Virus record (IMG/VR): IMGVR_UViG_3300032236_002285
Location: 248,001-312,000 of that record
Length of the DNA: 64,000 nucleotides
Direction: 5' to 3' (one strand)
Below, in pieces: positions 123 through 60,780 of the stretch (its first letter is position 1; each line of letters opens with the position of its first letter). The translations under genes and the position numbers were made by a program. The notes under the pieces were generated by a model. The model was not told the origin of the DNA, did not search any database, and saw nothing but the letters and a program-made list of their open reading frames with translations.

Positions 123-647
123 ATGAAACATATAAAGACATATAAACTATTTGAAAGTATTGATACTGATAAAATTTATAATAACATAGATACTTCTGAT
201 AATGATGTTTATTATCAAATACCATTCCAATGGTTTTATGACGGTAAAGAATTTGGTGATGACTTTAAGTTATTTCTTGGTGAAAGATTTATTTATGATT
301 ACATAAAAGATGAAGAAATAACAAAAGAATTAGAATCTGATTTAAGTAATGTTGATTTAAGTAAAGGGTGGGAATCTGATACATTTCATTCTGGTGATAA
401 TAAAGATAACATACACACTAAAAGGATTGCTAAATTAGTTCAGTCATTACAAAATAATGAGCCACTAAGACCTATATCTTTTTGGGTATCAGAAAATAGT
501 TATATGCATGATTGTTATAATTTCATAGAAGATGGAAATCATAGGTTAAGAGCTTTACAGTATTTAGGTTATGATTATTTCCCAGCTTATGTTTATGGTT
601 CTCATGAGAAGTTTATTTTAGAAGAATTAAAAAAATTAAATAGTTAA
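123..647 (+). CDS. ParB/Srx-like N-terminal domain protein with capsid-targeting-like N-terminus
   Basis: IEDGNHRLRAL motif typical of the ParB/sulfiredoxin fold; begins MKHIKTYKLFES. Confidence 0.55.
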   Translation: MKHIKTYKLFESIDTDKIYNNIDTSDNDVYYQIPFQWFYDGKEFGDDFKLFLGERFIYDYIKDEEITKELESDLSNVDLSKGWESDTFHSGDNKDNIHTKRIAKLVQSLQNNEPLRPISFWVSENSYMHDCYNFIEDGNHRLRALQYLGYDYFPAYVYGSHEKFILEELKKLNS

Positions 648-658
648 TATATACTATA

Positions 659-1132
659 ATGAAACATCTAAAGACATACAAGATATTTGAAAATATTGAT
701 ACGATAATAAATGATCTTAAAGATATCTTATTAGAGTTACAAGATAAGAACTTTAACATACGAATTGCGAGTATTGAACATCATGCTGGTGAAAATGCCT
801 TAGATATAACTATATCTAAAGATGGTGGTAATTTTGATTTCTGGACAGAAAGTAATATAGGTGAACTCACACCTTTCAATTTTATTGAGGTTAAAGAGGA
901 TCTAATAAGATTATTAGAATATGCTAATAGTGAAGGATGGTATGACTTTAACTTTGAAATTATTACACCATCAAACACATTAAATGGTAGTAAAAAATTT
1001 AATGATGGTACATACCAAGCTTCGGTGGAAGTTAAAGGTGATGAGATTGTAACTAATTACAGTTGGAATCAAGGTGAACCAATTAAAGATGATGAAAAGA
1101 TCCTTTGTGTTTATATTGGATTGTTGAAATAA
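659..1132 (+). CDS. hypothetical protein, MKHLKTYKIFE family (putative head-internal protein)
   Basis: N-terminal tag plus DLKDILLELQD, shared with the next ORF; TAATATATA at 645-653. Confidence 0.6.
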   Translation: MKHLKTYKIFENIDTIINDLKDILLELQDKNFNIRIASIEHHAGENALDITISKDGGNFDFWTESNIGELTPFNFIEVKEDLIRLLEYANSEGWYDFNFEIITPSNTLNGSKKFNDGTYQASVEVKGDEIVTNYSWNQGEPIKDDEKILCVYIGLLK

Positions 1133-1143
1133 TATATACTCTA

Positions 1144-1536
1144 ATGAAACATCTAAAATCATATAAAGTATTTGAGTCAACTGAGACAGAGCAAGACTTA
1201 AAAGATATCCTACTTGAGCTACAAGATGAAGGATATAAAGTTATACATAATGATGATGTTATGTTAGGGGTTACTGGTGAACCAGGAAATATTAAAGCTA
1301 TCTGGGTAAGAGATGTTAATAATCCAAGTTATAGTGAAGGTAAAGATTGGGAAGAGTTAAGAGATTACGCTTTAAGAATTAAAGATTACTTAGGTGATAA
1401 GTATTTGAGCTTTGCTTGGAGACCTATTCTTTTAGGAAGTCAAGGTAAAGAAAATCCTTATCATACTGTTAAGTTAAATGAAGATACCCAAATAGATGAA
1501 AAAATATACTCATTCGTAATAAAATACAAAGAATAA
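1144..1536 (+). CDS. hypothetical protein, MKHLKSYKVFE family (paralog of 659..1132)
   Basis: Start moved from 1105 to ATG 1144, 5 nt after TAATATATA (1130-1138); shares DLKDILLELQD. Confidence 0.65.
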   Translation: MKHLKSYKVFESTETEQDLKDILLELQDEGYKVIHNDDVMLGVTGEPGNIKAIWVRDVNNPSYSEGKDWEELRDYALRIKDYLGDKYLSFAWRPILLGSQGKENPYHTVKLNEDTQIDEKIYSFVIKYKE

Positions 1537-1566
1537 AAAAGCCCTCTTAATGAGGGCTTTCTTTTT
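1535..1566. terminator. bidirectional intrinsic terminator
   Basis: AAAGCCCTC-ttaat-GAGGGCTTT flanked by A/T runs, between convergent genes. Confidence 0.8.
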
Positions 1567-4501: not shown

Positions 4502-4577
4502 ATTTAAGGTTTTACATAAAGTTATGACACTACCATGACAATTCCAAAAATTATTTTTTTATTTAATATATACTTTA

Positions 4578-4979
4578 ATGAAACACTTAAAGAAATATAA
4601 TGAATCTGATCAAGAATTCACATTCATAGACATTATTGATATCCTACAAGATATCATTGATGAAGGTCATGATATTGTTATTTATTCAGCTACAGGTAAT
4701 TATTATACACCTGAAGATATTAATAAAAGAGGTGTAGAAACTGAATTCAGGTTTCAGAGATATGCTAATGAAAATAAAAAGTCATTTAAGATTCAAATCA
4801 ACTTCAAGATGAGTTTAGAGTATAGTTATCTTGTTGATTTCTTTGATGAGATGAAAGTACCTATCGCCAGATTTGAAGATACTGGATTTTATCTAAGCCA
4901 TATGGAACCAAAAGTAACTGACGAATCGGATCTCTATCGTTGTTATGGGGTTTACTACAATTTTGAATCAGATAATTAA
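4578..4979 (+). CDS. hypothetical protein, MKHLKKYNES family
   Basis: N-terminal tag; TAATATATA at 4564-4572. Confidence 0.6.
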   Translation: MKHLKKYNESDQEFTFIDIIDILQDIIDEGHDIVIYSATGNYYTPEDINKRGVETEFRFQRYANENKKSFKIQINFKMSLEYSYLVDFFDEMKVPIARFEDTGFYLSHMEPKVTDESDLYRCYGVYYNFESDN

Positions 4980-4983
4980 TAAG

Positions 4984-5577
4984 CTATAATCCAGATTTTT
5001 CTAAACAATCCTTTAAGAAAACCTTTGCTTCTTCTGGTGTTAAATCATTAGCATCTTTTCCACTTGGTACGGTATAAGCAAAATCACCAGCTTTAATTAG
5101 TCTTCTACCAGCCGCATCATTATCATAAATAACAATCTTCTTTTGTATTAAAGTTTTTAACCAAGATTTTAGTGAATCACTTGGGTTATTACAAAGAACA
5201 GCTATAGCCGGATAACCAGCTTCTTGAATTCTAGCCGCATCAAATATACCTTCAGTTATAAATACAAACTCATCACTCATAACATCTAAAGATTCTAATC
5301 CCCAAACAGCAATCTTTTTACCTTTACCTTCATCAGAAACCCAAGTGAAATATTTAGCCATTCTTGGATCTTCTAAATTGGATTGACCTGTTTTTTGATA
5401 ATCAGGATTGTATTTTTGATAACCCACCATTTGACCAGACAGGTTGTAAAGAAAGAAATAAGAATCTCCAGTATCTTCATCCATAATGACTCTAGTCTTC
5501 GTAGGATCAACGCCACGACCTTTTAGATGGTCTGTTAGACTACCTTCAAATTCTTCATATAGTTTTAAATATCTCAT
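4984..5577 (-). CDS. Toprim-domain (DnaG primase core-like) protein with N-terminal tag
   Basis: VFITEGIFDA and IYDNDAAG Toprim motifs; begins MRYLKLYEEFE; late motif at 5582-5590. Confidence 0.7.
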   Translation of the reverse strand: MRYLKLYEEFEGSLTDHLKGRGVDPTKTRVIMDEDTGDSYFFLYNLSGQMVGYQKYNPDYQKTGQSNLEDPRMAKYFTWVSDEGKGKKIAVWGLESLDVMSDEFVFITEGIFDAARIQEAGYPAIAVLCNNPSDSLKSWLKTLIQKKIVIYDNDAAGRRLIKAGDFAYTVPSGKDANDLTPEEAKVFLKDCLEKSGL

Positions 5578-5654
5578 AGTGTATATATTAATTTTAAATT
5601 AATACAAACTGGATGTATATACATTTATATATACTAAAAATATAATCTTACGAT

Positions 5655-5849: not shown

Positions 5850-5859
5850 TATATAGATT

Positions 5860-6903
5860 ATGAGATATATTAAAACATACGAGTCATATAAAACTAACAA
5901 ACTTCTTCAAGAAGATTTTGACAGAAAGATAACTATTCTACATAATGTAGAATTAGATGGTACAGATGAAGAACTTTTTAGAAGAATTTTTGACAAAGTT
6001 GTTGAATCTATCAAAGATGAATCTATTAAACAAGAAATCAAGAATTATGTTTCTGAAAATCAATTACTAAATGAAGGATTTTTTGATAAATTAAAAGAAA
6101 GATTTCCTAAAGCGGCTCAAGTTTCTAAATCACTTTCGGATAAAGCTGAAGGTATTTTAAGTAATATCTTACAAAAGGTTAAAGATGCTGTTTCTTTTGT
6201 TAAAAAGATTACTGAAGGTATATCAGAGTTTTTCAAAATGGCTATTGAAAAAGGTAAAGCTTTTTATATTGAGCAATTGAAAACTGGTCAGTTAAAATCA
6301 AAAGTAGATGAATTAGTTAAAACTAAAAAAGAAGGTCTGAAGACTGATTTATTTACAATTGAAAGTGTTCTTAATTTTTATAGAGTAGATTTTATGGGTA
6401 AGATTAATAATACTATTACAACCAATCTTACTAACTTCTTAAATAAAGAACAAACTCCAATTGCAGAATCTATGTTAAATGAAGGTGGTAATGTTATTTC
6501 TACTTTAGTTCATGGTATTGAAGCTATTCCACCATTCTCTTGGTTGGAAGCCCTTGCTAAATCTGGTGAAAAGGGTGCTGCCGCAGTTATTGCTGCTTTA
6601 AGCTCTTTAACTCAAAAATTAGGTGGTCATGCTTTTCAACTTCCAGTTGTTGCTATTTTAATTGGTTTACTTATAGAACAAATCATTAAAGGCCAAGCAG
6701 GTCACTGGTTATTAGAATTAGCTGGTCCTACTCCACTAGGAATGGCAATTAAAGGTATTAAAATGACAGCTTCTATAATAGCACTTATTGTTGCCATTGA
6801 TTCTGTTGTTGGTGGTCAATTGGGTATTGTTAATAATCATCACGATGACCACACCGAACACGGTGAACATGCAGAAACTGAGACTACTGAAAACACAGCA
6901 TAA
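5860..6903 (+). CDS. putative head-internal/ejection protein with hydrophobic C-terminal helices
   Basis: MRYIKTYES tag, repeated LLxE/LNE sites, hydrophobic C-terminal third, late motif at 5847-5855. Confidence 0.5.
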   Translation: MRYIKTYESYKTNKLLQEDFDRKITILHNVELDGTDEELFRRIFDKVVESIKDESIKQEIKNYVSENQLLNEGFFDKLKERFPKAAQVSKSLSDKAEGILSNILQKVKDAVSFVKKITEGISEFFKMAIEKGKAFYIEQLKTGQLKSKVDELVKTKKEGLKTDLFTIESVLNFYRVDFMGKINNTITTNLTNFLNKEQTPIAESMLNEGGNVISTLVHGIEAIPPFSWLEALAKSGEKGAAAVIAALSSLTQKLGGHAFQLPVVAILIGLLIEQIIKGQAGHWLLELAGPTPLGMAIKGIKMTASIIALIVAIDSVVGGQLGIVNNHHDDHTEHGEHAETETTENTA

Positions 6904-7769: not shown

Positions 7770-7780
7770 CAAAAATAAAC

Positions 7781-14866: not shown

Positions 14867-16486
14867 ATGAAATACATTAAAACTAGAAATAGATTTCTTG
14901 CTGAATCAAAAGGTGAAATGAGCGACAACGCTCTTCATACACTTGCGACTCATGATGATGGACAATCTCCTGATGTTCAAAAAAGTTTGGATGCACTTGA
15001 CGAGGTTTCTCCTAAAGGTAAAGTGGTAACTCGTTTTGCTCCTTCACCAACAGGATTTTTACATATCGGAGGTGTTCGTACAGCTCTTTACAACTACTTG
15101 TTTGCTAAAAAACACGGTGGTATCTTTTATGTTCGTATTGAAGATACTGACCAAAAACGTTTTGTAGGCGATGCTGAAAAATATATTCAAGACGCTTTAG
15201 AATGGTGTGGTATTGACCCAGATTATGCACCTTGGAAAGGTGGTCCTAATGGACCTTACCGCCAATCGGAAAGAGATTATTCTGGTCATATTCAAACTCT
15301 TTTAGATAAGGGTATGGCTTACTATGCTTTTGATACAGAAGATGATATGGTTAAAGTAAGAGCTGAAAATGCTCACTTTGCTTACGATACTAAAACTCGT
15401 ATGTCAATGAAGAACTCACTCTCTTTATCTAAAGAAGAAGTTGATGCACTTCTTGCTGCTAATACTCCATTTGTAATTCGCTTCAAAACACCAGAAAATA
15501 GAACTATCACCGTTAATGATGTAATTCGTGGTGAAGTTAGTTTGAATACAAATCAAACTGATGATAAAGTTTTGGTTAAATCAAATGGTATTCCTACATA
15601 TCATATGGCTAACGTATGTGACGACCACGATATGGGAACTACTCACGTTATTCGTGGTGAAGAATGGTTGCCTTCAACTCCACTTCACTTAATGTTATAT
15701 GAAGCATTTGGTTGGGAAGCTCCTACATTTGCTCACCTACCTCTAATTTTGAATCCTGATGGTAAAGGTAAGTTGTCTAAACGTAAAGCTTTAGCTTTAG
15801 GTATTCCAGCTTTCCCAATGGGTGGTGAAGGTGAAGATGATAAAGGTCAAAAAGTAAAGTATCTTGGTTTCAAAGATGAAGGTTTTGAACCACAAGCTAT
15901 GTTGAATTTCTTGGTGCTTTTAGGTTGGTCCCCAACAGATACTCAAGAACTTATGACTATGGCTGACATGATTTCTAAATTTGACTTAGCTCATGTTCAT
16001 AAGGCTGGTGCTCGTTTTGATGTTGAAAAAGCTAAACACTTTAATGCTCAACACTTGAACACTTATAGAAGTGATGAAGAAATTCTTTCACATATTGATA
16101 TGGGTGATACCTATCATTACTCACCAGAAAATCTTTCTAAGATTGTGGATATCTGTAAAAAGAGAGCAGTCTTTACTAAAGATTTACAAGCTGTTGCTGA
16201 TATCTTCTTTAAGCCAATTGTGATTAAAGAAACAGATGTTAAGTTATTAACTGATGATTACAAAAAAGTATTCTCAGTTTTTGTAACTAAGTCAATTGAT
16301 TGGACGGCTGAAACTATTAAACAAACAATTCACGACATTTGTCAAGAAATAGGTGTTAAAATGGGTAAGATAATGCCTGCTTTAAGATTGGCTATTGCTG
16401 GTGGATTACCAGGTCCAGATTTGGCAACAACAATGGAAATAATTGGTAGGGATGAAACCTTAATAAGAATTAAAAACACTTTATAA
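14867..16486 (+). CDS. gltX: glutamyl-tRNA synthetase with ~50-aa N-terminal extension carrying the capsid-targeting-like tag
   Basis: VVTRFAPSPTGFLHIGG, RIEDTD, HVIRGEEW, KLSKRK; starts MKYIKTRNRFLAES 5 nt after TAATATATA (14853-14861). Confidence 0.92.
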   Translation: MKYIKTRNRFLAESKGEMSDNALHTLATHDDGQSPDVQKSLDALDEVSPKGKVVTRFAPSPTGFLHIGGVRTALYNYLFAKKHGGIFYVRIEDTDQKRFVGDAEKYIQDALEWCGIDPDYAPWKGGPNGPYRQSERDYSGHIQTLLDKGMAYYAFDTEDDMVKVRAENAHFAYDTKTRMSMKNSLSLSKEEVDALLAANTPFVIRFKTPENRTITVNDVIRGEVSLNTNQTDDKVLVKSNGIPTYHMANVCDDHDMGTTHVIRGEEWLPSTPLHLMLYEAFGWEAPTFAHLPLILNPDGKGKLSKRKALALGIPAFPMGGEGEDDKGQKVKYLGFKDEGFEPQAMLNFLVLLGWSPTDTQELMTMADMISKFDLAHVHKAGARFDVEKAKHFNAQHLNTYRSDEEILSHIDMGDTYHYSPENLSKIVDICKKRAVFTKDLQAVADIFFKPIVIKETDVKLLTDDYKKVFSVFVTKSIDWTAETIKQTIHDICQEIGVKMGKIMPALRLAIAGGLPGPDLATTMEIIGRDETLIRIKNTL

Positions 16487-16518: not shown

Positions 16519-18798
16519 CTATTCAAATAGTGGGAATTTTGGCAAATATAGTCTCGTAGTGGCGTTATCTGCAAATATCATATATTTAGAATCATCTCTA
16601 ATAACATATTGATTAAGTATTTTATTATGAACATCAGATGGTATAATATCTGTAAACATTCTAATATTAGTTATTCTCATATCAGAAGCAAGTATATCAA
16701 GATTTGTATTTTCAAGTTGATATTCAATTGGTATAATATTTTGAGTACTATTATACTCTAATCTAAGTATAGTTGATGTTAAATTAGGAGCATCACTTTC
16801 CTCTTCTACATTTCTCTTATAGATGAATTGACTCATAGTTCTTTGTCTTTGGTCTATATTAAGAACATAACAATACCAAACATCTTCTTGAAGTGCTGTA
16901 TTATCACTTGATGCATGTCCTAATAGATCATAGTTATAAGTATTTGAATTTAAAGTAACTTGTATAGCATCATTTACCAAATTAACTTTCCAACCTAGTG
17001 AGTTAGTAACATCATAATAGTTCATAAAGTTATAAACCTCATCTGTTATATAATTATTAATCTTAAACCAAAGCATATATCCAATATTATCAGATACTTT
17101 AAGAATTGGATCAAAGTTTTGATAGGTAACTGCAACTTGCTGATAATTTACGGTAGACAAGTCATAATTAGCCTTACTAATAATAGTTGAAGAGTTTTCA
17201 ATTAATTCTTTATCAATTGTTGCATTATAACTTAATCTAATAGGATCGGATGATAATGGTGTAAATTGTTGCTTATTAGCAATTGAAGCTTTATCTTGAG
17301 CATTCTCAATGCCAAATAACTCATCAATAGTAGAGTTCTTGGTAAGTTGTTGTAACTTGTCTTTGATTTCCTGAGTACCAGCTTTGACATTTGCTTTTTG
17401 AGTGTATTTCTTCAATATCAATTTATAGTAAATAGCTGAGTTATTGAAGTTTCTAAATTGCTGAGCATGGTCAACTTGAAACATTCTATTAACATCACAG
17501 AAATACAAGAAATCTTCTTTTGAAGGTCTTCTTTGAGGTCCAAAAATTTCTTTGAATTGCTTTTTAGTTATATGAACCGTCATGTTTTCAAATAAACTTA
17601 AATCAAATTGATTCATTACTATTTGAGAATCTGGGAAATTATTACCATCAACTGCTACTTTTAAGTTACCTTCACATACTACATTATATAATTGATACTC
17701 ATGCATTGTATGGTCTTGACCTCTTTTATCTGGATCAGTAACAAAGTAAATAACTCTATGTCCAAACATTTGCTCAGAATCAGCACTTAATTTATTCAAT
17801 AAATCCATAGCAGTGTTTTGCTTGTAAGGATTAAATAAGTTAGCTTTATCTTGAGAATTCAATTGTGGTAAAGTTGAACCATTACCAGTTGTATCACAAG
17901 CACCAGAAGAATTTGAAATACCACCACCAACACCAGTACCTGAACCATTTGTATTATCAGCAGGTATAAAATTACCACTTGGATCCACATAACCTACTAA
18001 GTTAGATTGACAACACTCTCTAATACCATAAAGATTAGTTTTGAAATAATCTTGACTGACATTTTGAAAATCACCAATTAAATTAATATCTTGAATACTT
18101 TTAACTGATTGAGAGTTATTTGTTATTGAGTATTCTATTTGGAAAAATCTAATAGGATTAATTCTAACCGTTGTTATATTTTCTTTAGTAAATGGTTCCC
18201 AATTAGACCAAGTTCTTGAATTATCTTGTGAGAATCTATATTTAATATCAACATCAACCGTTCCTGTTGCTGATATAATTTCTAAGTCACTTATATTAAA
18301 AACTTTATAAATAAATGGAGCTTTCCAAATAATATTATCACCAGGCACTAAACTAATAGTACTAACACCATCACCAGCATTTTCAGCAACAACTCTTTCG
18401 AGTTTACCGCCAATTGAGTATTCTAAAATTCTAATAGCACCAACAGCAGATGAACCAGATCTAACCCATTTAATATCTAAATAAAGTGGGTCTTTGGTAT
18501 CAATAGTTGGGAAGTTATCAATAGCTCTTTTTAGATCAAACCAATCAGTCCAAGCATTACCATCTCTTGATATGCGATAATAGTTTTTCAAAAATCTAGT
18601 ATCAGTCATACCTAAAGTATCATACTTAAATGTTGTTAATTCTTTAACATTTTGTAAATTAACAAAACTTATTGTATATTCGGATCCGATTGAATTGAAA
18701 TATGGCGTCGCATCAACTGAATTGACTTGAGCATTTATATCAAATTTATCAGATATATCAATGGTGCCGTTTTCTAAGTTTGAAACTATTTGTTGCAT
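16519..18798 (-). CDS. neck/head-closure (T4 gp14-like domain) multidomain structural protein
   Basis: Central FGHRVIYF..FDLSLFENMTVHITKKQF..RRPSKEDFLYF..MFQV resembles gp14; LamG-like C-terminus; late motif at 18803-18811. Confidence 0.55.
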   Translation of the reverse strand: MQQIVSNLENGTIDISDKFDINAQVNSVDATPYFNSIGSEYTISFVNLQNVKELTTFKYDTLGMTDTRFLKNYYRISRDGNAWTDWFDLKRAIDNFPTIDTKDPLYLDIKWVRSGSSAVGAIRILEYSIGGKLERVVAENAGDGVSTISLVPGDNIIWKAPFIYKVFNISDLEIISATGTVDVDIKYRFSQDNSRTWSNWEPFTKENITTVRINPIRFFQIEYSITNNSQSVKSIQDINLIGDFQNVSQDYFKTNLYGIRECCQSNLVGYVDPSGNFIPADNTNGSGTGVGGGISNSSGACDTTGNGSTLPQLNSQDKANLFNPYKQNTAMDLLNKLSADSEQMFGHRVIYFVTDPDKRGQDHTMHEYQLYNVVCEGNLKVAVDGNNFPDSQIVMNQFDLSLFENMTVHITKKQFKEIFGPQRRPSKEDFLYFCDVNRMFQVDHAQQFRNFNNSAIYYKLILKKYTQKANVKAGTQEIKDKLQQLTKNSTIDELFGIENAQDKASIANKQQFTPLSSDPIRLSYNATIDKELIENSSTIISKANYDLSTVNYQQVAVTYQNFDPILKVSDNIGYMLWFKINNYITDEVYNFMNYYDVTNSLGWKVNLVNDAIQVTLNSNTYNYDLLGHASSDNTALQEDVWYCYVLNIDQRQRTMSQFIYKRNVEEESDAPNLTSTILRLEYNSTQNIIPIEYQLENTNLDILASDMRITNIRMFTDIIPSDVHNKILNQYVIRDDSKYMIFADNATTRLYLPKFPLFE

Positions 18799-22576: not shown

Positions 22577-22951
22577 ATGAAATATTTACAAACAATAAAC
22601 GAATATCAAAGAACTGTAGGTTTTAGATATTCTGAACCAAAAGAAAAATATAAAGTATCTTTATTATGTAAAGGTCAAGATATCAATGAAGATAAGATAA
22701 ATGAAGGTTTATCAAAAGTTAGTGAATTGACTTATGACTCAAAGTCTATTGAAGTAAATTTACTTGATGAAGGTATGATTGCTGAACTACCAGAAATTGG
22801 ATCTGTAGAGATTAGCGCAATTGTTAGTTTTAATGTAACTCTTTACAATGAGAAAGAAGTAAATGGTGTTGTTAGTGAATTAGGTCAAAAGTTATCAAAA
22901 TTTGATATTGAAATATTAGATTTTAAATCAAAAGAAAATTTGGAAGATTAA
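22577..22951 (+). CDS. hypothetical protein, MKYLQTINEY tag family
   Basis: Late motif at 22564-22572; N-terminal tag. Confidence 0.6.
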   Translation: MKYLQTINEYQRTVGFRYSEPKEKYKVSLLCKGQDINEDKINEGLSKVSELTYDSKSIEVNLLDEGMIAELPEIGSVEISAIVSFNVTLYNEKEVNGVVSELGQKLSKFDIEILDFKSKENLED

Positions 22952-28278: not shown

Positions 28279-28721
28279 TGATTGATTTTTTTCATAGTGG
28301 AAGTCAAGTAGGATTTGTAATCAACGGTGTTGGTGGTGCAATCCTACTTTTTTATATATTGATAGAACTATCTATGGTGGTTGTAACTGGTACATTTTTA
28401 TGGCGTAAGTTATTAATTGCTTTTAATGTTCATAGACAAGTAAAGTCAACTATCCCAAGGTGGTGGAAGATTGATAGAATATCAATTATAACAATTGTTA
28501 AGAAAAAGAATAATCTTTTATCTTGGGATTACGAATGTTATGTTCATGTTAGTTCTAATTATATTGAGGGAGTTTGGACAAATGACCATGTAAAAACTAA
28601 TAGTTGGGGAAAAATTTTAAAGTGTGACCTTTTTGATGATATTAAAACTATTGATTCAAGACACGGTGATAAAGTAAAACAGTATAATAGAGATAATACA
28701 TTAGATAAACTTGGAATTTAG
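28278..28721 (+). CDS. membrane protein with C-terminal RDNTLDKLGI motif
   Basis: N-terminal hydrophobic helix; shared C-terminal motif. Confidence 0.55.
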   Translation: MIDFFHSGSQVGFVINGVGGAILLFYILIELSMVVVTGTFLWRKLLIAFNVHRQVKSTIPRWWKIDRISIITIVKKKNNLLSWDYECYVHVSSNYIEGVWTNDHVKTNSWGKILKCDLFDDIKTIDSRHGDKVKQYNRDNTLDKLGI

Positions 28722-49503: not shown

Positions 49504-49717
49504 AACAGGAGCTGGTGGTGAAATCTATTCAAATCCAGAAGCAGATAAATTAAGTGAGCACTACGGTATTGATATAGCTGATCAATTAACATCTATGTTA
49601 TCGGCTGAATTAGCCAAAAGTATTGATAGAGATATTCTAAGAAGTTTAGGTTTAGAACCAGATAGAAATAAAAGAAGGATAAATTCTATTAATAAGATAT
49701 TTAAAGACGTTGAATAA
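49490..49717 (+). CDS. 75-aa protein containing a T4 gp23 major-capsid-like helix
   Basis: EHYGIDIADQLTSMLSAELAKSIDRDILRSL resembles the gp23 HGLDAE.ELANILS.EI..EINREVVR segment. Confidence 0.45.
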   Translation: MNQIKTGAGGEIYSNPEADKLSEHYGIDIADQLTSMLSAELAKSIDRDILRSLGLEPDRNKRRINSINKIFKDVE

Positions 49718-50300
49718 TAGTTGGTAAAGAACCAAGTTCAAGTACTTTAGATTTATCCAATAAGAACTCAATATCATAAAAGTTAAAGTGAAATGTCATT
49801 GTAAATTCTTTAGCATTCACTTTTTGTTGTGAATAGTTAAATGTATTATCTGAAAGACCTTTAAGAACTATTTCATAGAATCTAATTACATAAATAGCGT
49901 CTCTGTGTATATCAACACAAGTAATTGTAAAAGGATTAACCCAAGCATTTTCAACATCTAAATAGTGTTTAGTTAAAATATCAAACATTAACCAATAGTT
50001 CAAATCAGCATCAACAGATCTAAATGTGACATTTAACTCATGAGTTGTTGTGATATCTTGAACATTTTTAGCTGGTTTGAATTCTCTAATTTTACCTCTC
50101 ATATTAGTTTGTTTAGGCATATCAAAACTAATTCCTGGAAAATTAACAGACTTAATAGTTGAGTTAATATAATCAATTACATTCTCATACTGAACCCAAT
50201 TTTTTTCTAATATTGGTGTATAAGTTTGAATAACATCATGTTCCACAAAATCACTTGGTAAGTTAAATATAAACTGACTCCCTTGACTACTTAATCTCAT
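49701..50300 (-). CDS. tail tube / tube-associated (T4 gp19/gp54-like) structural protein
   Basis: TIKSVNFPGISF..ELNVTF..LNYWLMF..FTITC..EFTMTFHFNFY pattern; size fits. Confidence 0.5.
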   Translation of the reverse strand: MRLSSQGSQFIFNLPSDFVEHDVIQTYTPILEKNWVQYENVIDYINSTIKSVNFPGISFDMPKQTNMRGKIREFKPAKNVQDITTTHELNVTFRSVDADLNYWLMFDILTKHYLDVENAWVNPFTITCVDIHRDAIYVIRFYEIVLKGLSDNTFNYSQQKVNAKEFTMTFHFNFYDIEFLLDKSKVLELGSLPTIIQRL

Positions 50301-50316
50301 TTATTATTGTTATTTT

Positions 50317-52206
50317 TTATCCAGTAAGACCTGTTGCTGATGTCGCTGATGATATTGCATTATTTGATAATACACCTGGTTTAGATACCGGTATAGACTC
50401 AGTTGTTATTGCTCTTCTAGTAACTACAGCAGTTTCTTTAGGTAAATTAGGATCTTTAATAATTGTTGGGTTAGCACTAGCCGCTTGATTCAATCCAGCA
50501 ACATTAGCAACATTATCATGTACTCTAAATAAACCAGTATAAATAACAGATGTGATATTTTGAACATAACTAGTAATATAAAAAACATTAATACCTGATT
50601 CGTAAATCTTTTTAAGATCAGGATATTTATTTTGTGTAACTTTAAAGGCTAATTGACCAATTGATAAGTCAATTGAACCAGATTCTGTATAAAGTGGAAA
50701 TTCAAAATATTTAGAATCCGTTTTGAATACCAACTTAATATCACCATAAGTAGTTAGATTCAAGTAGTTAGGTTTAAGAACATCACCATTAGCTATATAA
50801 AAATTAACAATATTATCAAATGGGTATAGAACAATAGTAATTTTACCATTTCCATAGAATGTTGTATTATTAAATAAAGCATTATCTGATTTACCAACAA
50901 TATTAGCTCTGTCTATTAAAACAGGGAATGGAACATTAACCGTTTCAACCTTTACATTATTAGTATTAGTGCTAGGAATAACTCTACCTGTTGATGCTTT
51001 ACTAACAGAGTTAGGTAAAGTTATCTGACCCATTGAGTTTGATAAACCTACTAATGAAGGATCAATATTAGATTTAATATTATAGATTTTTGGTTTATGA
51101 GCATTTGATAAATTAATCTTAGTTAGATTTAAAGCATATTTAGATACTTCATCTTGTAGCATACCATAAGAAGCTCTTCTAATAATATAAGAATCATCTA
51201 CAGCATCTATTAATCTCATTTCAACATCTATAATAGCTGTTGTAGTTGAATATTTAATAATCGGTCTATATTCAACGGTTTCATTAAAGTTTTCATTTTG
51301 AGTAACCGTTGTTGTTTTACCTCTAATATTTTGTTCATACATTGTTATATTATACTGAACATAATACCTATGACCAATATTATAAGACTCTTCTATAAAC
51401 TGGTTAAACCCACCAATTGTATCATTGTAAGTTCCGTATATTTCAAAGAAATCACCATTAGCTGAATGTGCTACAACCAAACCAAGTCTTTCAAATTCTG
51501 GAGTTTGTGGAAGAGTTGTTGTTACTTTAGATGCTAAAAGGTAGCTAGTTATACCATTTATTGTTTGTATATTATTTATAAAGTGAAAATCAATAAATAT
51601 TGGTGATGTTGAATTCATACCACCACCATTGGTAAGATTAGCATTTATACTATTCTCTTTTGGAAGATTATTGGTCTTTTGAGAAGCAATATCACTTAAA
51701 GCAGGTACTAAAATAGTTATATTTTTACCCCATTGTTTTTCTTGAAAAAGAAGTGGAGGTGTTGTAAAATTTAACAAGTATTGCTGACTAACATCAGTCA
51801 TATCAAAGTAAAAATTAGAAACATCAAATGTTCTTTGGTTTGAAACATCAAACCCATATACTTTAATATAAAAACCTAAATATTCACCAAATGTCCAGTT
51901 TATTGGAACGTGAATTTTAATAGTATCAAATCTAGTTGGGGTACCAGAAGCATACTCTTTTAATTGTAAAAATGAATAATAAGATGGATTTACTTTTGCG
52001 TATTTCTGACTTACTGAATCAACTCTAAATAATTGATTACCTAATGTGTTTGCAGTAACAGATGAGCTACCTGATATAAAAGATTGGCTTCTGTCTCTAG
52101 AATCTACCAAAACATCATAAGATTCACTTAATAAATTACCGTCATCATAAATGTATTCAAGTAAAATATTTTTATCTAGTTTTATAAATTTAGAAATTTT
52201 AGCCAT
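50317..52206 (-). CDS. putative structural protein
   Basis: 629 aa, beta-rich; late motif at 52227-52235; adjacent to the tube-like gene. Confidence 0.45.
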   Translation of the reverse strand: MAKISKFIKLDKNILLEYIYDDGNLLSESYDVLVDSRDRSQSFISGSSSVTANTLGNQLFRVDSVSQKYAKVNPSYYSFLQLKEYASGTPTRFDTIKIHVPINWTFGEYLGFYIKVYGFDVSNQRTFDVSNFYFDMTDVSQQYLLNFTTPPLLFQEKQWGKNITILVPALSDIASQKTNNLPKENSINANLTNGGGMNSTSPIFIDFHFINNIQTINGITSYLLASKVTTTLPQTPEFERLGLVVAHSANGDFFEIYGTYNDTIGGFNQFIEESYNIGHRYYVQYNITMYEQNIRGKTTTVTQNENFNETVEYRPIIKYSTTTAIIDVEMRLIDAVDDSYIIRRASYGMLQDEVSKYALNLTKINLSNAHKPKIYNIKSNIDPSLVGLSNSMGQITLPNSVSKASTGRVIPSTNTNNVKVETVNVPFPVLIDRANIVGKSDNALFNNTTFYGNGKITIVLYPFDNIVNFYIANGDVLKPNYLNLTTYGDIKLVFKTDSKYFEFPLYTESGSIDLSIGQLAFKVTQNKYPDLKKIYESGINVFYITSYVQNITSVIYTGLFRVHDNVANVAGLNQAASANPTIIKDPNLPKETAVVTRRAITTESIPVSKPGVLSNNAISSATSATGLTG

Positions 52207-55528: not shown

Positions 55529-56104
55529 TTAAATGAAATAACCTTTTAAGAAATCAATTAATCTATTACCAACTTCAATTTTCTCTTCGTTTGGATTCCA
55601 CATTGGTCTTTCATAAGCCCAATTTGCCAAAACCTGAGCTTTTGTAAGATATTCTACAGCATCTTCTAAAATAGTAATAATTTGTTCTGGTTCAACATTT
55701 TCACCTTCCTCAATATGCTTTTTAAGATCTTCAACAGAATCATCAAATCCCATTTCAATAGTACCTATAATAGCTTGAAATGCTACTTGTAAGGCTTGCA
55801 TATTATATTCGGATTTAAGTTTCTCTAACTTGTTATCCATAACTAAAACTCTAAATTTAAATTGATCCTCATCTGATAAATCATACTTATCAACCATGTC
55901 TTCAATGATACTTAGAATATCTTCACCATCAGAGACTCTATACATAAACTCTTGTTTATTTGACTTTGGTAAAGCTTTAGCAAATTGCTCAGCTTGATAT
56001 CCAATATTATATTTATCGGGGTTAGCATTATATGATTTTATAGTTGATTTAAAATCATCAGATAATGATTCAATAAATAATTTAAAGTTTTTTATATTTT
56101 TCAT
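55529..56104 (-). CDS. hypothetical protein, MKNIKNFKLFIES tag family
   Basis: N-terminal tag. Confidence 0.6.
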   Translation of the reverse strand: MKNIKNFKLFIESLSDDFKSTIKSYNANPDKYNIGYQAEQFAKALPKSNKQEFMYRVSDGEDILSIIEDMVDKYDLSDEDQFKFRVLVMDNKLEKLKSEYNMQALQVAFQAIIGTIEMGFDDSVEDLKKHIEEGENVEPEQIITILEDAVEYLTKAQVLANWAYERPMWNPNEEKIEVGNRLIDFLKGYFI

Positions 56105-56889
56105 TTTGATTTAATTACTTTTATTCTTTCCAATTGATACTTCATAATATCAACTTCTTGATTCTGTTTTAAGAAATCAACTATTTTTTGATACATCTGT
56201 ATGGTAATCCTGCAGTCTGTAAGAGCATCGTGATAGTTTGTCATATTAATTCCAAGCGCTGGTCCTACTTTAGACATTGATGATGATATTAATCCACCAT
56301 CTCTATCAGATGTTCCAATAAAATTAATTATATCTTTATATTTAACATCAGTTTCAGCCAATGCTTGTAATAGTGGTAGGTAGTATAATTGAATTAACAT
56401 CTTAGTGTCAAATACTTCATTCTTAATTTTATGACCATATCTACCAGATAACATAGCCATATCAAAAGCAGCATTTTGTGCTATAAGTAAACAAGGTTCG
56501 TAATTACCAACCCAATCAAAGAACTGATCTAATATTTCTTGTTCATTTTTATATTTGAACTTACCGGAACCATAATGATTGAATCCTAAAACCCATTTAG
56601 TTTTATCACCAGGTTTACTAAATTTTGACTTAGTTTCATCAGTTAGTTTAATCTTCTCATCAAATAAACCTAATTCTTTGAATGTATTTGAATTAAAATT
56701 ATAATCAGTAGACAAACAAGATACTTGAGTTAATTGTTGTTTCTTAGGACCACCCAACCCAGTCGTCTCGGTATCTATGAACAACCACTTTAAATTAGAT
56801 TTTGACTCAATCCAATTGAGAATCTCTGGTATACTTTTATACCACATCTTATTCTCATTAATTAATTCACTATATTTTAATATTTTCAT
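56101..56889 (-). CDS. DEDDh 3'-5' exonuclease (DnaQ-like) with N-terminal tag
   Basis: FIDTETTG, AQNAAFD, HDALTDC; MKILKYSELINE; late motif at 56894-56902. Confidence 0.8.
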   Translation of the reverse strand: MKILKYSELINENKMWYKSIPEILNWIESKSNLKWLFIDTETTGLGGPKKQQLTQVSCLSTDYNFNSNTFKELGLFDEKIKLTDETKSKFSKPGDKTKWVLGFNHYGSGKFKYKNEQEILDQFFDWVGNYEPCLLIAQNAAFDMAMLSGRYGHKIKNEVFDTKMLIQLYYLPLLQALAETDVKYKDIINFIGTSDRDGGLISSSMSKVGPALGINMTNYHDALTDCRITIQMYQKIVDFLKQNQEVDIMKYQLERIKVIKSK

Positions 56890-56984
56890 AAACTATATAT
56901 TAAAACCTATACTATGTTTTTTATTTTGGGTTGATACAGAAAGACATTAAAAAATTAATATATAAGTAAAATAGAATTTTATAT

Positions 56985-57746
56985 ATGAAAAATTGTTTAA
57001 AGTGTAATGAGGATATAACAAAAAGAGGTGCTAGATTTAAATATTGTAAAGAATGTTCAGAGATATCAAAAAAAGAATCTTATAAAAAATATCTAAGTAG
57101 TGAAGATGTTAAAATTTCAAAAAATAAATATAGCAAAGAATATTACAAAGAAAATAAAGACAAATTAAAACCAGTTAGAAAAAAATGGAGGGAAACTAAT
57201 TCACAAAAAGAGAAAAATTACAATAAAGATAGATATCAATCATTTGATAAAGAAAGATTATCAAACTACTACACCGAGAATAAAGAAGAAATAAATAGAA
57301 AAAAATTAGAATATAGAAAAACTGAAGAGTATAAAAAATGGATATCTGAATATAGAATAAAAAATGCTCATAAGCAAAGATATAGAGATTCATTAAAATC
57401 TGTTATTAGGCGACTTAACCGTGATAAAAATGATTATACAAATAATCTATTAGGATATAGTGATTTAGAATTTAAGTTACATATAGAAAGCCAATTCACT
57501 GAAAAAATGAGTTGGTCTGAAAGAAAATCATTTGAAATTGACCATATCATACCAATAGTTGCTTTTATAGAAAATACTCCTTTGTCTATTGTTAGTTCTT
57601 TAGAAAATTTAAGACCAATGGATCCTGAAGATAATATTAAAAAATATACATCTCTGGATTATAACTATATTGAATTGTATGAAAAATATATTGAATTTTT
57701 AACGGATGATTATAAGAGTAAGGTATTGGATTATATTTCAAAGTAA
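56985..57746 (+). CDS. HNH homing endonuclease
   Basis: N-terminal CxxC..CxxC; FEIDHIIPI..SLENLRPM..NIKK. Confidence 0.8.
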   Translation: MKNCLKCNEDITKRGARFKYCKECSEISKKESYKKYLSSEDVKISKNKYSKEYYKENKDKLKPVRKKWRETNSQKEKNYNKDRYQSFDKERLSNYYTENKEEINRKKLEYRKTEEYKKWISEYRIKNAHKQRYRDSLKSVIRRLNRDKNDYTNNLLGYSDLEFKLHIESQFTEKMSWSERKSFEIDHIIPIVAFIENTPLSIVSSLENLRPMDPEDNIKKYTSLDYNYIELYEKYIEFLTDDYKSKVLDYISK

Positions 57747-58276
57747 ATCTTTTCACCATTTGATAGTGAATAACAAATTTTATTTACATTCTTAACTTCG
57801 TATTTATAATCGGGTTTTACATATTTCTTACCAGTTCCTTTCTTAACATAAGAAATTGTAATATGTGGCTTGTAATCAGGGAATTGATCCGAGTTAGGAA
57901 ATTTAGACAACTCATCGTGTAAATGTTGTAAAGCACCATCCGGTATTACATTAAACTTAACAACATCAAATTTATCGTTTTTTTCAAATATACCTATACC
58001 ATCTACTTTAATATTAATATCATCTGAATAGTTCTCAAATACTGATTTAACCATTTCAGGAGTTACATCATCATGTAAACCATATAAAATAGTAACATGT
58101 GGATTATCTTGAATGCCTTTAGGATCATCATTTTCATCACCGTAAAATATGTCTTCTGGATCAATAGATGATGTTATTTCATCCCAGTTACTTACCGGAA
58201 TATTAATCATTACACAGCCATATTTATGACCGTTAATTGATTCATTTACAAATTGTATATAGTTTTTAATTATCAT
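57731..58276 (-). CDS. 2H phosphoesterase, T4 gp57B/Acb1-like, with N-terminal tag
   Basis: Two HxT motifs, PHVTILY and FPDYKPHITISY; begins MIIKNYIQFVNES. Confidence 0.75.
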   Translation of the reverse strand: MIIKNYIQFVNESINGHKYGCVMINIPVSNWDEITSSIDPEDIFYGDENDDPKGIQDNPHVTILYGLHDDVTPEMVKSVFENYSDDINIKVDGIGIFEKNDKFDVVKFNVIPDGALQHLHDELSKFPNSDQFPDYKPHITISYVKKGTGKKYVKPDYKYEVKNVNKICYSLSNGEKIYFEI

Positions 58277-58704
58277 ATTTTACCTTGTATTATTATTCTA
58301 TTAGTTTCCCATAAATTATTATATGAAAATTCGAAATCAAGTCCAGTTTCATCGTGCAATCTTTTTATAGCGATTATAAAATCCTGATAATCTTCTGAAG
58401 AAAAATTCACAGAATTGGTTGTTGTTCTTTTTTCCCAAGAAATATCACCACTAGAGTTTATCTCTCCTGTAAATTCAAATTTCTTATAATTATAAGGATC
58501 ATACGAAAATATATGATCCTTTTCTCGTTTTTTCATTATATATTTGAAATGTGGCATTGGATGATATGATAAATTATTATCTGGGTCTTGTGACCAATAC
58601 CAACCATTATCTTCAAACTCTTGAAAACAATCTTTAATAGTATCAAAAACTTGTTGATAGATTTTTTCCTCTATTGATTCATTAAATCTTTTAAGATATT
58701 TCAT
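58273..58704 (-). CDS. hypothetical protein, MKYLKRFNES tag family
   Basis: Start moved to ATG 58704, 7 nt from the late motif (58712-58720). Confidence 0.65.
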   Translation of the reverse strand: MKYLKRFNESIEEKIYQQVFDTIKDCFQEFEDNGWYWSQDPDNNLSYHPMPHFKYIMKKREKDHIFSYDPYNYKKFEFTGEINSSGDISWEKRTTTNSVNFSSEDYQDFIIAIKRLHDETGLDFEFSYNNLWETNRIIIQGKI

Positions 58705-58841
58705 ATATCTATATATATTATTTGTTGTAATCAAATTTATTTTATATCTTTGTAATGTTAATTTCTTCTTAGATAGAATTTAATTGGTGGCACAAGGACG
58801 GACTCGAACCCAGATTGTTAAACAAATTAAATTAAAGAATT

Positions 58842-59930
58842 ATGAGTAATTTTAAAGTATCTAAAGAAAAAATCGAGCTCTTCGTTCACCCGAACGCTGA
58901 CGCTCTTGAACTCGCAAAAATTGGTTCTTACCAAGTAGTAGTTCAAAAAGGTCTTTACACGACCGGTGATGAGGTAATCTTCGCACCTGAAAAATCTGTT
59001 CTAACCGGACAGCTTAAATCAGAGTACGAAAAATATCTTTCTGGTCCAAATAAAGATAGGGTAAAGGCGGTTCGTCTTAGAAATGAAATCTCTTCTGGGA
59101 TTATCATTCCAAAAGAATTAGTTCCTAACTTTGAAAGCTATACGGTTGGTGTAGATATTTCAGAGGATTTAGGAATCACTAAATACGAACCACCAATTCC
59201 AGTTCACTTGGCTGGAAGTGTGACAAGATTTGATATGCCACACATCGGAAATCACGACTGCGAACATGCAAATGTTTATGTTAATGATTTAGTACCAGGT
59301 GAAAGAGTTGTTATCACTGAGAAAGTACATGGGTCTCAATTCATCTTAGCACATGAGATTGAAACTGAGAAAACGATTGTAAGTTCTAAGGGTATGTTAA
59401 AAGCCGGATTGTCTTTACAAGATGAAGAAGGTAACACATACTGGGTAGCGGCTAGGAACGATAATATCATTGGTAGAATTAGAAATAATTTTACAGAAGG
59501 TGTTGTTCAAGTGTTTGGTGAGGTTATTCCAGTTCAAAGTGGATATAACTACGGACAAACAAAACCAACCGCAAGGTTGTTTGATGTTAGGGTAAATGGC
59601 AAATCCATTCCTTACGATATGGTACCTGATGAATTGAGAGAGTTGTGGGTACCAATCATTTACGATGGTACTCTTAATTTAGAATCTAAAGAAGTAGTTC
59701 TTTATGAAGATGAATCAAGAGGAATCCGTAAGACAAGAGTTGACTTCATCCTTCCAAAAGATGTCGTAGAACTTTGTAAGGGAAAAGAGTTAGTGTCTGG
59801 TCAAGAATTACATATCCGTGAAGGTGTTGTACTTCGTCCTTACATTGACCGTGATGCTAAAGATGGTACTAAACTTAGGTTGAAAATCATCAACCCGGCA
59901 TACAAGGAATCCGGAGAAGAAATTAACTAA
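58842..59930 (+). CDS. RNA ligase, DRB0094/Rnl5-like with N-terminal tRNA-binding OB domain
   Basis: HPNADALEL..VVQKG..LRNEISSG (OB domain); TEKVHGS (motif I), VFGE, LFDV, REGVVL, LKIIN. Confidence 0.85.
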   Translation: MSNFKVSKEKIELFVHPNADALELAKIGSYQVVVQKGLYTTGDEVIFAPEKSVLTGQLKSEYEKYLSGPNKDRVKAVRLRNEISSGIIIPKELVPNFESYTVGVDISEDLGITKYEPPIPVHLAGSVTRFDMPHIGNHDCEHANVYVNDLVPGERVVITEKVHGSQFILAHEIETEKTIVSSKGMLKAGLSLQDEEGNTYWVAARNDNIIGRIRNNFTEGVVQVFGEVIPVQSGYNYGQTKPTARLFDVRVNGKSIPYDMVPDELRELWVPIIYDGTLNLESKEVVLYEDESRGIRKTRVDFILPKDVVELCKGKELVSGQELHIREGVVLRPYIDRDAKDGTKLRLKIINPAYKESGEEIN

Positions 59931-59933
59931 AAG

Positions 59934-59962
59934 AAAAACCCACTCATTTGAGTGGGTTTTTT
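59934..59962. terminator. bidirectional intrinsic terminator
   Basis: AAAAACCCACTCA-tt-TGAGTGGGTTTTT between convergent genes. Confidence 0.75.
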
Positions 59963-60252
59963 TATTCTTCGTCTTTGTGAATTAATTTAATTTCATCTTG
60001 CCATCCTTCTGGAAGTTCTTCCTCTTCTTCTGTATCAAAATCAAAACCCATTGAAACAAGATAATTCATTACTGAGTTTATCATAATATCATCAGCACCT
60101 CTTTCTTTCATATAATCTTCAAAATCTTCTACCGTATAAGAACCTTTCTCAGCTCTTAACTCTTCTAATTTAGGTAATATATCTACTGCGATATCTTCAT
60201 GAATATCAGAATCTATTTTACCGTATGCTTCAAATGTTTTTAAGTATTTCAT
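59962..60252 (-). CDS. acidic hypothetical protein, MKYLKTFEAY tag family
   Basis: N-terminal tag. Confidence 0.6.
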   Translation of the reverse strand: MKYLKTFEAYGKIDSDIHEDIAVDILPKLEELRAEKGSYTVEDFEDYMKERGADDIMINSVMNYLVSMGFDFDTEEEEELPEGWQDEIKLIHKDEE

Positions 60253-60261
60253 ATAACTATA

Positions 60262-60780
60262 TTATTTTTTTGACCAGATAGATTTATTAAAAACCTTTTC
60301 AGCTTCAGACTTTATTACAGAATACAATTGAGAGAATTTATTTAAATCAAATGGCGCTTCTTCGTCTGATTCAAAGTAACAATTTTGTATAAACTCTAAA
60401 GGTGGACAAGCCGCAACAACTCTATTGATATATTCTTCTTCATCAAAATCTCTATTGTGAATACTACTATCAATATTCATTAAGTTTCTGTATTTCTCAC
60501 GGTTATAAGTTCCTATTTGTTGCATTATAGGATCTAATAAGATTGAAATATCAACTATTGTTTGAGTTAAGTTTTGCTCTTTACTCGTAGCTTGTGTTAA
60601 CAATAATAAGCCGGTAAATGCTCTAGATAAAACTAAGTGTGGTACAACATTTGTACCACGAACCGTGCCTTTCCATTTTAACTCATGTTTAAATTGGTCA
60701 TTATATACAACAAAACTATCATTTATATAATCATCAAGTGTATATTTTGATGATTCATTAAATCTCTTTAAGTGTTTCAT
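60262..60780 (-). CDS. hypothetical protein, MKHLKRFNES tag family
   Basis: N-terminal tag. Confidence 0.6.
   Translation of the reverse strand: MKHLKRFNESSKYTLDDYINDSFVVYNDQFKHELKWKGTVRGTNVVPHLVLSRAFTGLLLLTQATSKEQNLTQTIVDISILLDPIMQQIGTYNREKYRNLMNIDSSIHNRDFDEEEYINRVVAACPPLEFIQNCYFESDEEAPFDLNKFSQLYSVIKSEAEKVFNKSIWSKK

Follow-up and report, generated by a model that had tools for sequence, protein, structure and literature searches.

The 64-kb stretch of DNA analyzed here (positions 248,001 to 312,000 of IMG/VR virus record IMGVR_UViG_3300032236_002285, hereafter the window) has a G+C content of 30% and contains 12 genes whose products begin with the same short N-terminal peptide, which we call the tag (Table 1). 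The window also contains 27 tRNA genes in two arrays (7698-10427 and 23258-24289) and encodes a glutamyl-tRNA synthetase (GluRS), a glutaminyl-tRNA synthetase (GlnRS), a methionyl-tRNA synthetase (MetRS)-like protein, a ribonucleotide reductase small subunit, an RNA ligase, a ClpB/ClpC-type AAA+ ATPase, a T4 gp32-like single-strand DNA-binding protein and a glycosyltransferase island. The DNA runs that contain the window are freshwater metagenomes. At the nucleotide level its only relatives among deposited phages are the uncultured 635-735 kb genomes LR745206, LR756502 and LR756501/3, which are Mahaphage megaphages with Bacteroidetes as predicted hosts (PMC7162821); the nearest IMG/VR contig, L023, is 83% identical across 5.4 kb. 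Genome-wide counts given below refer to LR745206, a complete relative of 635 kb with 921 genes defined as open reading frames (ORFs).

A first reading of this DNA, made from the letters alone (the sequence-only reading), had proposed that about 15 of its proteins share an N-terminus resembling the capsid-targeting sequence (CTS) of phage T4. All 15 of the positions it gave are ATG starts of real ORFs, and 12 of them carry clean tags, while 58276 and 30613 are divergent variants and 56889 is doubtful. The pattern in which the tag had been written matches no site in the window when taken literally, because the position of its Glu varies (residues 8, 9, 11 and 13). What the 12 genes share is M-[KR]-[HYN]-[LI]-[KQ]-x-[YFIR]; this looser pattern is matched by 14 of 2341 window ATGs on both strands, 12 of which are gene starts. 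Scored with a tag profile trained solely on tags from other contigs, the 12 reach 11-25 bits, and 30613, 56889 and 58276 stay below 4 bits each. The starts at 58276 (MIIKNYIQFVNES) and 30613 (MISNYNSFIEDL) look like a tag variant one residue shorter. Several paralogues of the 30613 product occur in LR745206, six of them with similar N-termini; its N-terminus is probably a divergent tag. We regard the tag at 56889 as doubtful because that N-terminus aligns with the interdomain linker of a fused LR745206 orthologue. Among the enzymes that had been named as tagged, GluRS and the Toprim protein carry clean tags, the 2H phosphoesterase (58276) has the variant only and the DEDDh exonuclease (56889) the doubtful form; the ParB-like label given to the product of 123 goes back to a weak PHROG match (E = 2e-4). 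The canonical tag of the window Toprim protein is replaced in its LR745206 orthologue by the variant MIIKKYIKFINEE.

Table 1. Coordinates of tagged, variant and untagged reference late genes in the window (aa, amino acids; nt, nucleotides).
Product	N-terminus	Coordinates	Strand	Length	Upstream motif and other features
Tagged protein	MKHIKTYKLFES	123..647	+	174 aa	24.1 bits; upstream region cut by window edge
Tagged protein	MKHLKTYKIFEN	659..1132	+	157 aa	DI[LF]xEL.D.G cargo family; TAATATATA 645-653, 5 nt before ATG
Tagged protein	MKHLKSYKVFES	1144..1536	+	130 aa	DI[LF]xEL.D.G cargo family
Tagged protein	MKHLKKYNES	4578..4979	+	133 aa	DI[LF]xEL.D.G cargo family; late motif 4564-4572
Tagged Toprim-domain protein	MRYLKLYEEFEG	4984..5577	-	197 aa	Late motif 5582-5590
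Tagged protein	MRYIKTYESY	5860..6903	+	347 aa	Two predicted transmembrane segments; late motif 5847-5855
Tagged glutamyl-tRNA synthetase	MKYIKTRNRFLAES	14867..16486	+		Catalytic domain from residue 52; late motif 14853-14861
Tagged protein	MKYLQTINEY	22577..22951	+	124 aa	Late motif 22564-22572
Tagged protein	MKNIKNFKLFIES	55529..56104	-	191 aa	Operon-internal, downstream of late promoter 56894-56902
Tagged protein	MKYLKRFNES	58273..58704	-	143 aa	DI[LF]xEL.D.G cargo family; late motif 58712-58720
Tagged protein	MKYLKTFEAY	59962..60252	-	96 aa	Variant late motif AATAATATAG ends 4 nt before ATG
Tagged protein	MKHLKRFNES	60262..60780	-	172 aa	Operon-internal, behind late promoter 61306-61314
2H phosphoesterase (Acb1/LigT-like)	MIIKNYIQFVNES (variant tag)	57731..58276	-		
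Protein with variant N-terminus	MISNYNSFIEDLLLE	28718..30613	-	631 aa	Late motif 30620-30628
DEDDh exonuclease	MKILKYSELINEN (tag doubtful)	56101..56889	-		Late motif 56894-56902
Untagged late gene		16519..18798	-	759 aa	TAATATATA 18803-18811, 4 nt before ATG; promoter-class reference
Untagged late operon		49701..52206	-	629 aa and 199 aa	TAATATATA 52227-52235, 20-nt leader

Two upstream motifs are over-represented in LR745206, T[TA]ATATATA and TAnnTTTG. The first has 256 sites, whose distance to the following ATG is 4-6 nt or 17-30 nt, and precedes the genes for portal, capsid, protease-scaffold, sheath, tube, gp25, gp4 and UvsW; because it stands upstream of structural genes, we call it late. 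It appears to be a phage-specific late promoter-like motif, found upstream of every structural gene that we identified. The second we take to be the Bacteroidota sigma-A -7 box, and hence a host-type promoter. Examples in the window are TAnnTTTG at 26398, 32217 and 63509 and TAATATATA at 645, 18803 and 52227. Genome-wide, both motif classes often end just 4-6 nt before the ATG, so the corresponding mRNAs are probably leaderless. TAATATATA occurs 20 times in the window against 5.2 expected, and in 9 of the 12 tagged genes the ATG follows the end of this motif, or of a close variant, by 4-8 nt, in agreement with the sequence-only reading, which had placed most of them just after a late motif. 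A weak candidate for a gp55-like late sigma factor lies at 189151-189516 of LR745206 (E = 4e-4).

When genes were assigned to units by a simple walk along same-strand gene runs, the 73 strictly tagged genes of LR745206 divided into 61 in late units, 4 in host-type units and 8 in neither, compared with 301, 342 and 205, respectively, for untagged genes (odds ratio 17, p = 1e-14). In the window, 11 tagged genes fall in late units, none in an early unit, and 1 is unassigned. By promoter class alone, late synthesis is accordingly predicted for 61 of the 65 assignable tagged genes of LR745206 and for 11 of 11 in the window. One look-alike absent from the earlier list, a NUDIX protein at 30693 (MATIKKFNQF, 10.9 bits), belongs to a host-type promoter unit and was rejected as a member; its likeness to the tag is probably due to chance. 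None of the identified shell and tail homologues of LR745206 is tagged. The window has untagged late genes as well, among them one for a 759-aa protein whose look-alikes in a protein atlas are T4 neck-protein/Laminin_G_3 clusters, and an operon whose 199-aa product gives a weak match to T4 gp3 (tail completion) and whose 629-aa product drew uninformative look-alikes from the same atlas.

A genome-wide profile of the tag, the check suggested together with the original observation, bears out its abundance. In LR745206, 73 of 921 genes match the strict pattern and 97 of 921 (10.5%) reach the profile cut-off of 10 bits that we used for megaphage tags, compared with 3 of 2705 control peptides starting at internal Met residues. 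The tagged proteins are short (median length 162 aa), seldom contain transmembrane segments (2 of 97, against 73 of 767 untagged proteins) and are more acidic than other proteins (median net charge per residue -0.051 versus -0.019). Homologues in LR745206 are present for 4 of 12 tagged and 32 of 50 untagged window genes, which is a trend only (p = 0.10). Searches against PHROGs with the tagged and the large untagged proteins gave almost no matches.

Beyond these two sequences, the tag is also widespread among uncultured megaphages of the Mahaphage type. We scanned IMG/VR with a query consisting of the promoter and the first five codons, leaving the positions beyond free, and at least 120 loci on contigs of 4-640 kb match it. 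Among the matches listed, the free positions are conserved, with [FY] at position 7, E/N/K at 8 and [FY] at 10, and the same listed loci hold at least 177 further tagged ORFs that the DNA pattern did not pick. Many of these sit behind other upstream motifs, e.g. CAAATAAATTTAACAT or GGATATACTTATAT, and they often form tandem arrays of genes for 100-170 aa proteins. An exact 27-base pattern for MKYLKxFENF matched 9 viral loci and nothing in 596 Gb of bacterial and archaeal genome sequence; at this stringency, the tag is restricted to viral sequence.

The proteins behind the tag are diverse. The earlier statement that they are otherwise mostly unrelated is upheld in the window, where BLAST joins only 659 and 1144 once the first 15 residues are removed, and a profile search unites 659, 1144, 4578 and 58704 in one divergent family. 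Across contigs, BLAST sorts the 233 tagged proteins that are 90 aa or longer into 148 clusters. Among 61 representatives, Pfam detected ART-PolyVal, NUDIX, DUF3990, Tpt1/KptA, ankyrin, P-loop, GNAT, C39 peptidase and other families, and among the tagged or variant genes of the window GluRS, Toprim and 2H. In the commonest cargo family, the tag is followed by a linker that varies, a helix with the signature DI[LF]xEL.D.G and an alpha/beta domain; a profile search found 34 members, four in the window and about 23 in LR745206, and three members have no tag. It has the look of a large, fast-diverging paralogous group of small alpha/beta proteins. An AlphaFold2 model of 1144-1533, built from window and IMG/VR sequences, reached pLDDT 79.7 and pTM 0.74, with a fold from residue 14 onward and the tag (residues 1-13) as a low-confidence appendage; Foldseek found no match for this model in PDB or BFVD at E <= 0.001.

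The GluRS gene illustrates how the tag moves. In the window and in L023 a late motif precedes the gene, and the protein has the tag and about 40 aa of linker ahead of the catalytic domain, which begins at residue 52. The LR745206 orthologue (50% identical) is untagged, starts at the position of window residue 52 and has a TAnnTTTG promoter upstream, while synteny with the adjoining late gene (759 aa in the window, 744 aa in LR745206) is kept. In this gene, promoter class and tag have switched together. These data bear directly on the possibility that the tagged proteins descend from a single old paralogous family in which only the N-terminus has escaped divergence. The 34-member group, which includes 659, 1144, 4578 and 58704, is a genuine case of such descent. 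However, the tag is carried by unrelated folds (class I aminoacyl-tRNA synthetase, Toprim, NUDIX, ADP-ribosyltransferase (ART), P-loop, ankyrin and 2H), the body of the tagged GluRS is orthologous to an untagged one, and even the paralogous group has untagged members and linkers of variable length. For the tagged set as a whole, common descent is already contradicted, and we give it next to no credence. What we observe is a short N-terminal peptide on otherwise unrelated proteins, as in the cargo of the T4 CTS.

We also considered whether the shared start might be a feature of the nucleic acid or of translation, either a mobile cassette of promoter plus 5' coding end or a start optimized for leaderless late mRNAs, with a peptide that has no role of its own. 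T-even phages do shuffle genes by way of conserved regulatory flanks, the late motif lies 4-6 nt before the ATG in most promoter-proximal tagged genes, and GluRS gained promoter and tag together. By contrast, synonymous codon use at tag positions follows the background of the same genes in an unselected set (AAA/AAG for Lys 86/14 versus 85/15; GAA/GAG for Glu 83/17 versus 85/15) while the amino acids are fixed, and selection therefore acts on the peptide and not on DNA or RNA. Moreover, 38 of the 73 strictly tagged genes of LR745206 have no late motif within 60 nt, many of them being operon-internal, and about 65 untagged genes share the 4-6 nt spacing, so that the tag is not a by-product of leaderless starts. 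Other lineages pair the same peptide with the different upstream motifs mentioned above, and the structural late genes lack it. We consider an origin at the nucleic acid level very unlikely. The tag is portable and specific to the late promoter class, and selection on it operates at the protein level.

As a peptide, the tag has the consensus M-K-[YH]-[LI]-K-x-[FY]-(E/N/K)-x-[FY] and a length of 10-13 residues. It often ends in a candidate site for proteolytic removal: a hydrophobic-x-E-[SNDAG] site occurs within residues 6-18 of 56 of 97 tagged but 67 of 767 untagged LR745206 proteins, the P1' residue at the hydrophobic-x-E sites of tags is mostly S or N, and hydrophobic-x-E lies within residues 6-20 of 200 of 273 tags, an enrichment over untagged N-termini with an odds ratio of 14. 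In the window GluRS, for example, the ending is ...FLAE|S. The helical hydrophobic moment of the first 11 residues is 0.42 for tags and 0.29 for untagged N-termini, compared with 0.42 for IPIII and 0.46 for IPI of T4. The tag alternates charged and aromatic residues and has no hydrophobic stretch, whereas secretion or lipoprotein signals have a hydrophobic core of at least 10 residues behind a basic N-terminus, and the true signal peptides of the window (1565-4501 and 6936-7271) look different; its conserved part is far shorter than the propeptides of about 80-160 residues of the phiKZ/SPN3US type.

In T-even phages, the diverse internal proteins have only the CTS in common, which loads them, and foreign proteins fused to it, into the scaffolding core and is then removed by the protease gp21 (PMC3012670; PMC5694885). 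The N-termini in the T4 record are MKTYQEFIAE for IPII and IPIII, MKTFKEF for IPI and MELITELFDE for Alt. When the megaphage tag profile was run on the N-termini of 372 T4 ORFs, IPI ranked first (9.6 bits) and IPII and IPIII fifth and sixth, all three below the 10-bit megaphage cut-off. The two systems appear alike in having a short N-terminal peptide of the form M-K-x-hydrophobic-[KQ]-x-F on unrelated proteins, with amphipathic helix character, an end that in the megaphages is often a candidate hydrophobic-x-Glu site, late expression (in the megaphages predicted from promoter class), small cargo genes that tend to turn over quickly and, in the megaphage relatives, a head module of gp20/gp21/gp23 type. 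They differ in scale, the megaphage having about 97 tagged proteins, or 10% of its genes, where T4 has a handful, in cargo, which in the megaphages includes housekeeping-type enzymes such as GluRS and is acidic on average, and in the variable position of the Glu and the fusion of the protease to a repeat scaffold. The likeness is one of pattern only, and the megaphage system is known from sequence alone.

The head module was identified in LR745206, whereas the window itself holds only gp32 and the weak gp3 match among T4-like proteins. A phmmer search with T4 proteins matched the gp17 terminase (4e-50) and the gp20 portal (5e-23) as well as gp4, sheath gp18, tube, gp25, gp5, gp3 and capsid gp23; Pfam identifies the capsid protein as Gp23 (1.8e-26), and some 85 residues precede the domain. 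Directly upstream of the capsid gene, a 707-aa gene (198546-200669) contains a gp21-type protease domain, so that gp21-family protease, gp20 portal and gp23 capsid protein occur together. With this protease as query, tblastn matched 757 phage records, including annotated prohead proteases of Pelagibacter phage HTVC008M, PA5oct, cyanophages and Lak phages (1e-15 to 1e-17), and hhalign aligned it with T4 gp21 (97.3% probability, E = 1.7e-11). A profile search of PDB with the protease domain found 5JBL (E = 8e-9), whereas a single-sequence phmmer search of PDB gave no match. His72, Ser127/128 and Asp149 are invariant across 20 diverse homologues. The N-terminal 230 residues of the protease-scaffold are 86-93% identical across the best 120 of more than 1600 homologues. 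The remainder of the 707-aa protein consists of 10-11 tandem 14-residue repeats, YSEY[LI]AEN[LV]DKNI, followed by a poly-acidic (Glu/Asp) stretch, and [LIV]AE[NHS] occurs 15.6 times per 1000 residues in this scaffold part compared with 0.067 in the rest of the proteome. The region fused to the protease looks like a scaffold made of T4-style (L/I)-x-Glu cleavage sites, and the ending of the tag mirrors its [LI]AE repeats. IAE is also the end of the T4 CTS.

Other known systems resemble the tag in part. Head and ejection proteins of phiKZ and SPN3US have N-terminal propeptides that are cut after Glu, at (S/A/G)-x-E, by the gp21 homologues gp175 and gp245, and these phages inject a large proteome (PMC5694885). 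They match the reading considered here in that many inner-head proteins are targeted by a propeptide, which a gp21-family protease trims after Glu; unlike the 10-13 residue tag, which is nearly identical across more than 140 families, their propeptides are mostly longer than 100 residues and have no short consensus in common. The polyvalent proteins of phages and conjugative elements (Iyer et al. 2017, cited in PMC7824862) share with the tagged set ART-PolyVal, DUF3990, Tpt1/KptA, GNAT and peptidase domains, which are typical of proteins delivered together with DNA. They differ in joining many domains in one giant polypeptide, whereas the megaphages have separate small tagged genes. The logic is analogous in a further case, to which we claim no sequence relationship. 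Encapsulin cargo-loading peptides are portable peptides of about 10 residues that load diverse enzymes into an HK97-fold shell; they are usually C-terminal, bind the shell directly and stay uncleaved. In the cultured Vibrio phage VB_VaC_SRILMA (196 kb), which shares a multi-copy protein family with the megaphages, small hypothetical genes at 882-2836 of the record start MKFKQFLAES, MKFKEYLNEL and MNFKEYIQLGE, N-termini that resemble the T4 CTS. No canonical tag was found in a sampled Vibrio phage region.

Taken together, these observations lead us to favor, with some confidence but well short of certainty, the reading that the tag is a T4-like capsid-targeting propeptide marking cargo that is packaged and probably ejected. 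By means of the tag, a protein would dock on the scaffolding core while the prohead assembles, and the gp21-type prohead protease would then cut the tag off after Glu, as it may do in the (L/I)AE repeats of its own scaffold. The trimmed protein would stay in the DNA-filled head, and cargo retained there would probably be released into the next host cell along with the DNA. A variable acidic linker joins the tag to otherwise unrelated proteins, which would be made late, concurrently with the head proteins. Docking, cleavage, retention in the virion and ejection are steps that we infer only. The original proposal of a portable, T4-CTS-like tag on late cargo is in this sense partly supported, through selection, portability, promoter class and the head module of the relatives. 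The lack of the tag on shell and tail proteins, its resemblance to IPI, IPII and IPIII of T4, the scarcity of transmembrane segments among tagged proteins and the place of the tag outside the modeled fold also speak in its favor.

Several observations weigh against a capsid-targeting role. We found no tagged cultured relative: in Tenacibaculum phage PTm1, 1 of 56 sampled N-termini (50 kb) qualifies, and Pelagibacter phage HTVC008M has no tag in the 100 kb sampled. The head module is seen in relatives and not within the 64-kb window. Ninety-seven proteins, about a tenth of the proteome, far exceed the handful of T4 cargo proteins, the acidity of the cargo fits poorly beside packed DNA, and the packaging of a tRNA synthetase would be odd. 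Two transmembrane segments are predicted for one tagged family, that of 5860 and its orthologue. The position of the Glu varies (8, 9, 11 and beyond) and P3 is often not aliphatic. Finally, 40-kb samples of the phages LR756501, LR756504 and Lak-A1, which have the same protease family, contain few if any canonical tags (LR756501 has a shorter form, MIKKFESY), and the protease machinery therefore does not need this particular tag.

Some of these points would be accommodated if the tag were an address of late proteins other than the capsid interior, such as a helix for a membrane or assembly site, a handle for an AAA+ protein or chaperone, or a signal for timed degradation. A short amphipathic helix can serve binding in general, and a two-ring ClpB/ClpC-type AAA+ ATPase is among the phage's own products (window 36643-38775). 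The cargo, which is acidic, counts cytoplasmic enzymes such as GluRS among its members, transmembrane segments occur in one tagged family, and other phages with the same protease do without the tag. Such an address leaves unexplained the likeness to IPI, IPII and IPIII of T4, the hydrophobic-x-Glu ending that is mirrored in the scaffold repeats, the restriction to the promoter class of the head genes and the ART-type domains, which typify injected proteins. Nor do we know of a precedent in which about 100 phage proteins carry such a Clp or membrane tag at the N-terminus. We consider another address improbable, although it deserves more weight than the nucleic acid feature or common descent.

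Several further features of the window deserve mention. The tRNA arrays each lie downstream of a TAATATATA site (7496 and 23078); several of the tRNA genes, at 82-87 nt, exceed the usual length, and two (9917-9989 and 23550-23621) have odd anticodon loops according to ARAGORN. The GlnRS gene (24307-25911) directly follows three tRNA-Gln genes, and the MetRS-like gene (10757-11992) follows the first array. Between 39463 and 49503, about 11 same-strand genes have neither promoter motif upstream and a lower G+C content (0.27-0.29); judged by N-terminal sequence motifs only, they have a glycosyltransferase or sugar-nucleotide (epimerase/dehydratase-like) look. Classical hydrophobic signal peptides begin the products of 1565-4501 (minus strand, 978 aa) and 6936-7271 (minus strand, 111 aa), which have no family match and are probably exported or surface proteins. 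Within a queried 11.4 kb (36643-48045), the part conserved at the DNA level is the ClpB/ClpC-type AAA+ gene, which is 80% identical in LR745206 and LR756502; further matches, of 74-75%, to short contigs under the record name 'Listeria phage LM 4-11-1/4-14-1' may simply reflect a conserved cellular-type clpB/clpC gene. The 2H phosphoesterase and DEDDh exonuclease, two genes in the window (56101-58276), form one fused 438-aa ORF in LR745206 (448257-449573) that starts MKLKKYKQFIKES, and the window DEDDh gene has its own late promoter; from the gene arrangement, we read the split as a gene fission or fusion event.

The exact tag strings were not found in any paper, and the megaphage and jumbo-phage papers make no mention of capsid targeting. 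A tag of this kind is known from T4; its scale, cargo and clade are new, and we found no paper reporting it. We are evenly divided on the wider claim, in which one portable cargo-loading tag, a relative of the T4 CTS, is carried by about 100 proteins, or 10% of the genes, in Mahaphage-type megaphages of Bacteroidota. The set so marked would include a glutamyl-tRNA synthetase, nucleases, ADP-ribosyltransferases and a large family without a detectable fold match. If RNA data confirm them, the two promoter classes, one of host type and one phage-specific, and the spacing from which leaderless mRNAs are predicted would aid the annotation of Bacteroidota megaphages in general.

If the tag is a packaging signal, it provides a list, obtained from sequence only, of the proteins carried into hosts by the largest known phages, none of which has been cultured. 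Megaphages would then bring a pre-made proteome into the cell along with their DNA, enlarging the known phage-delivered proteome to about a hundred species, and enzymes of translation and anti-defense would be delivered and not made after entry. The tag would also be a compact natural device for loading foreign proteins into very large capsids, and the CTS/gp21 system of T4, studied mainly in T-even phages, would extend to a distant and environmentally widespread clade.

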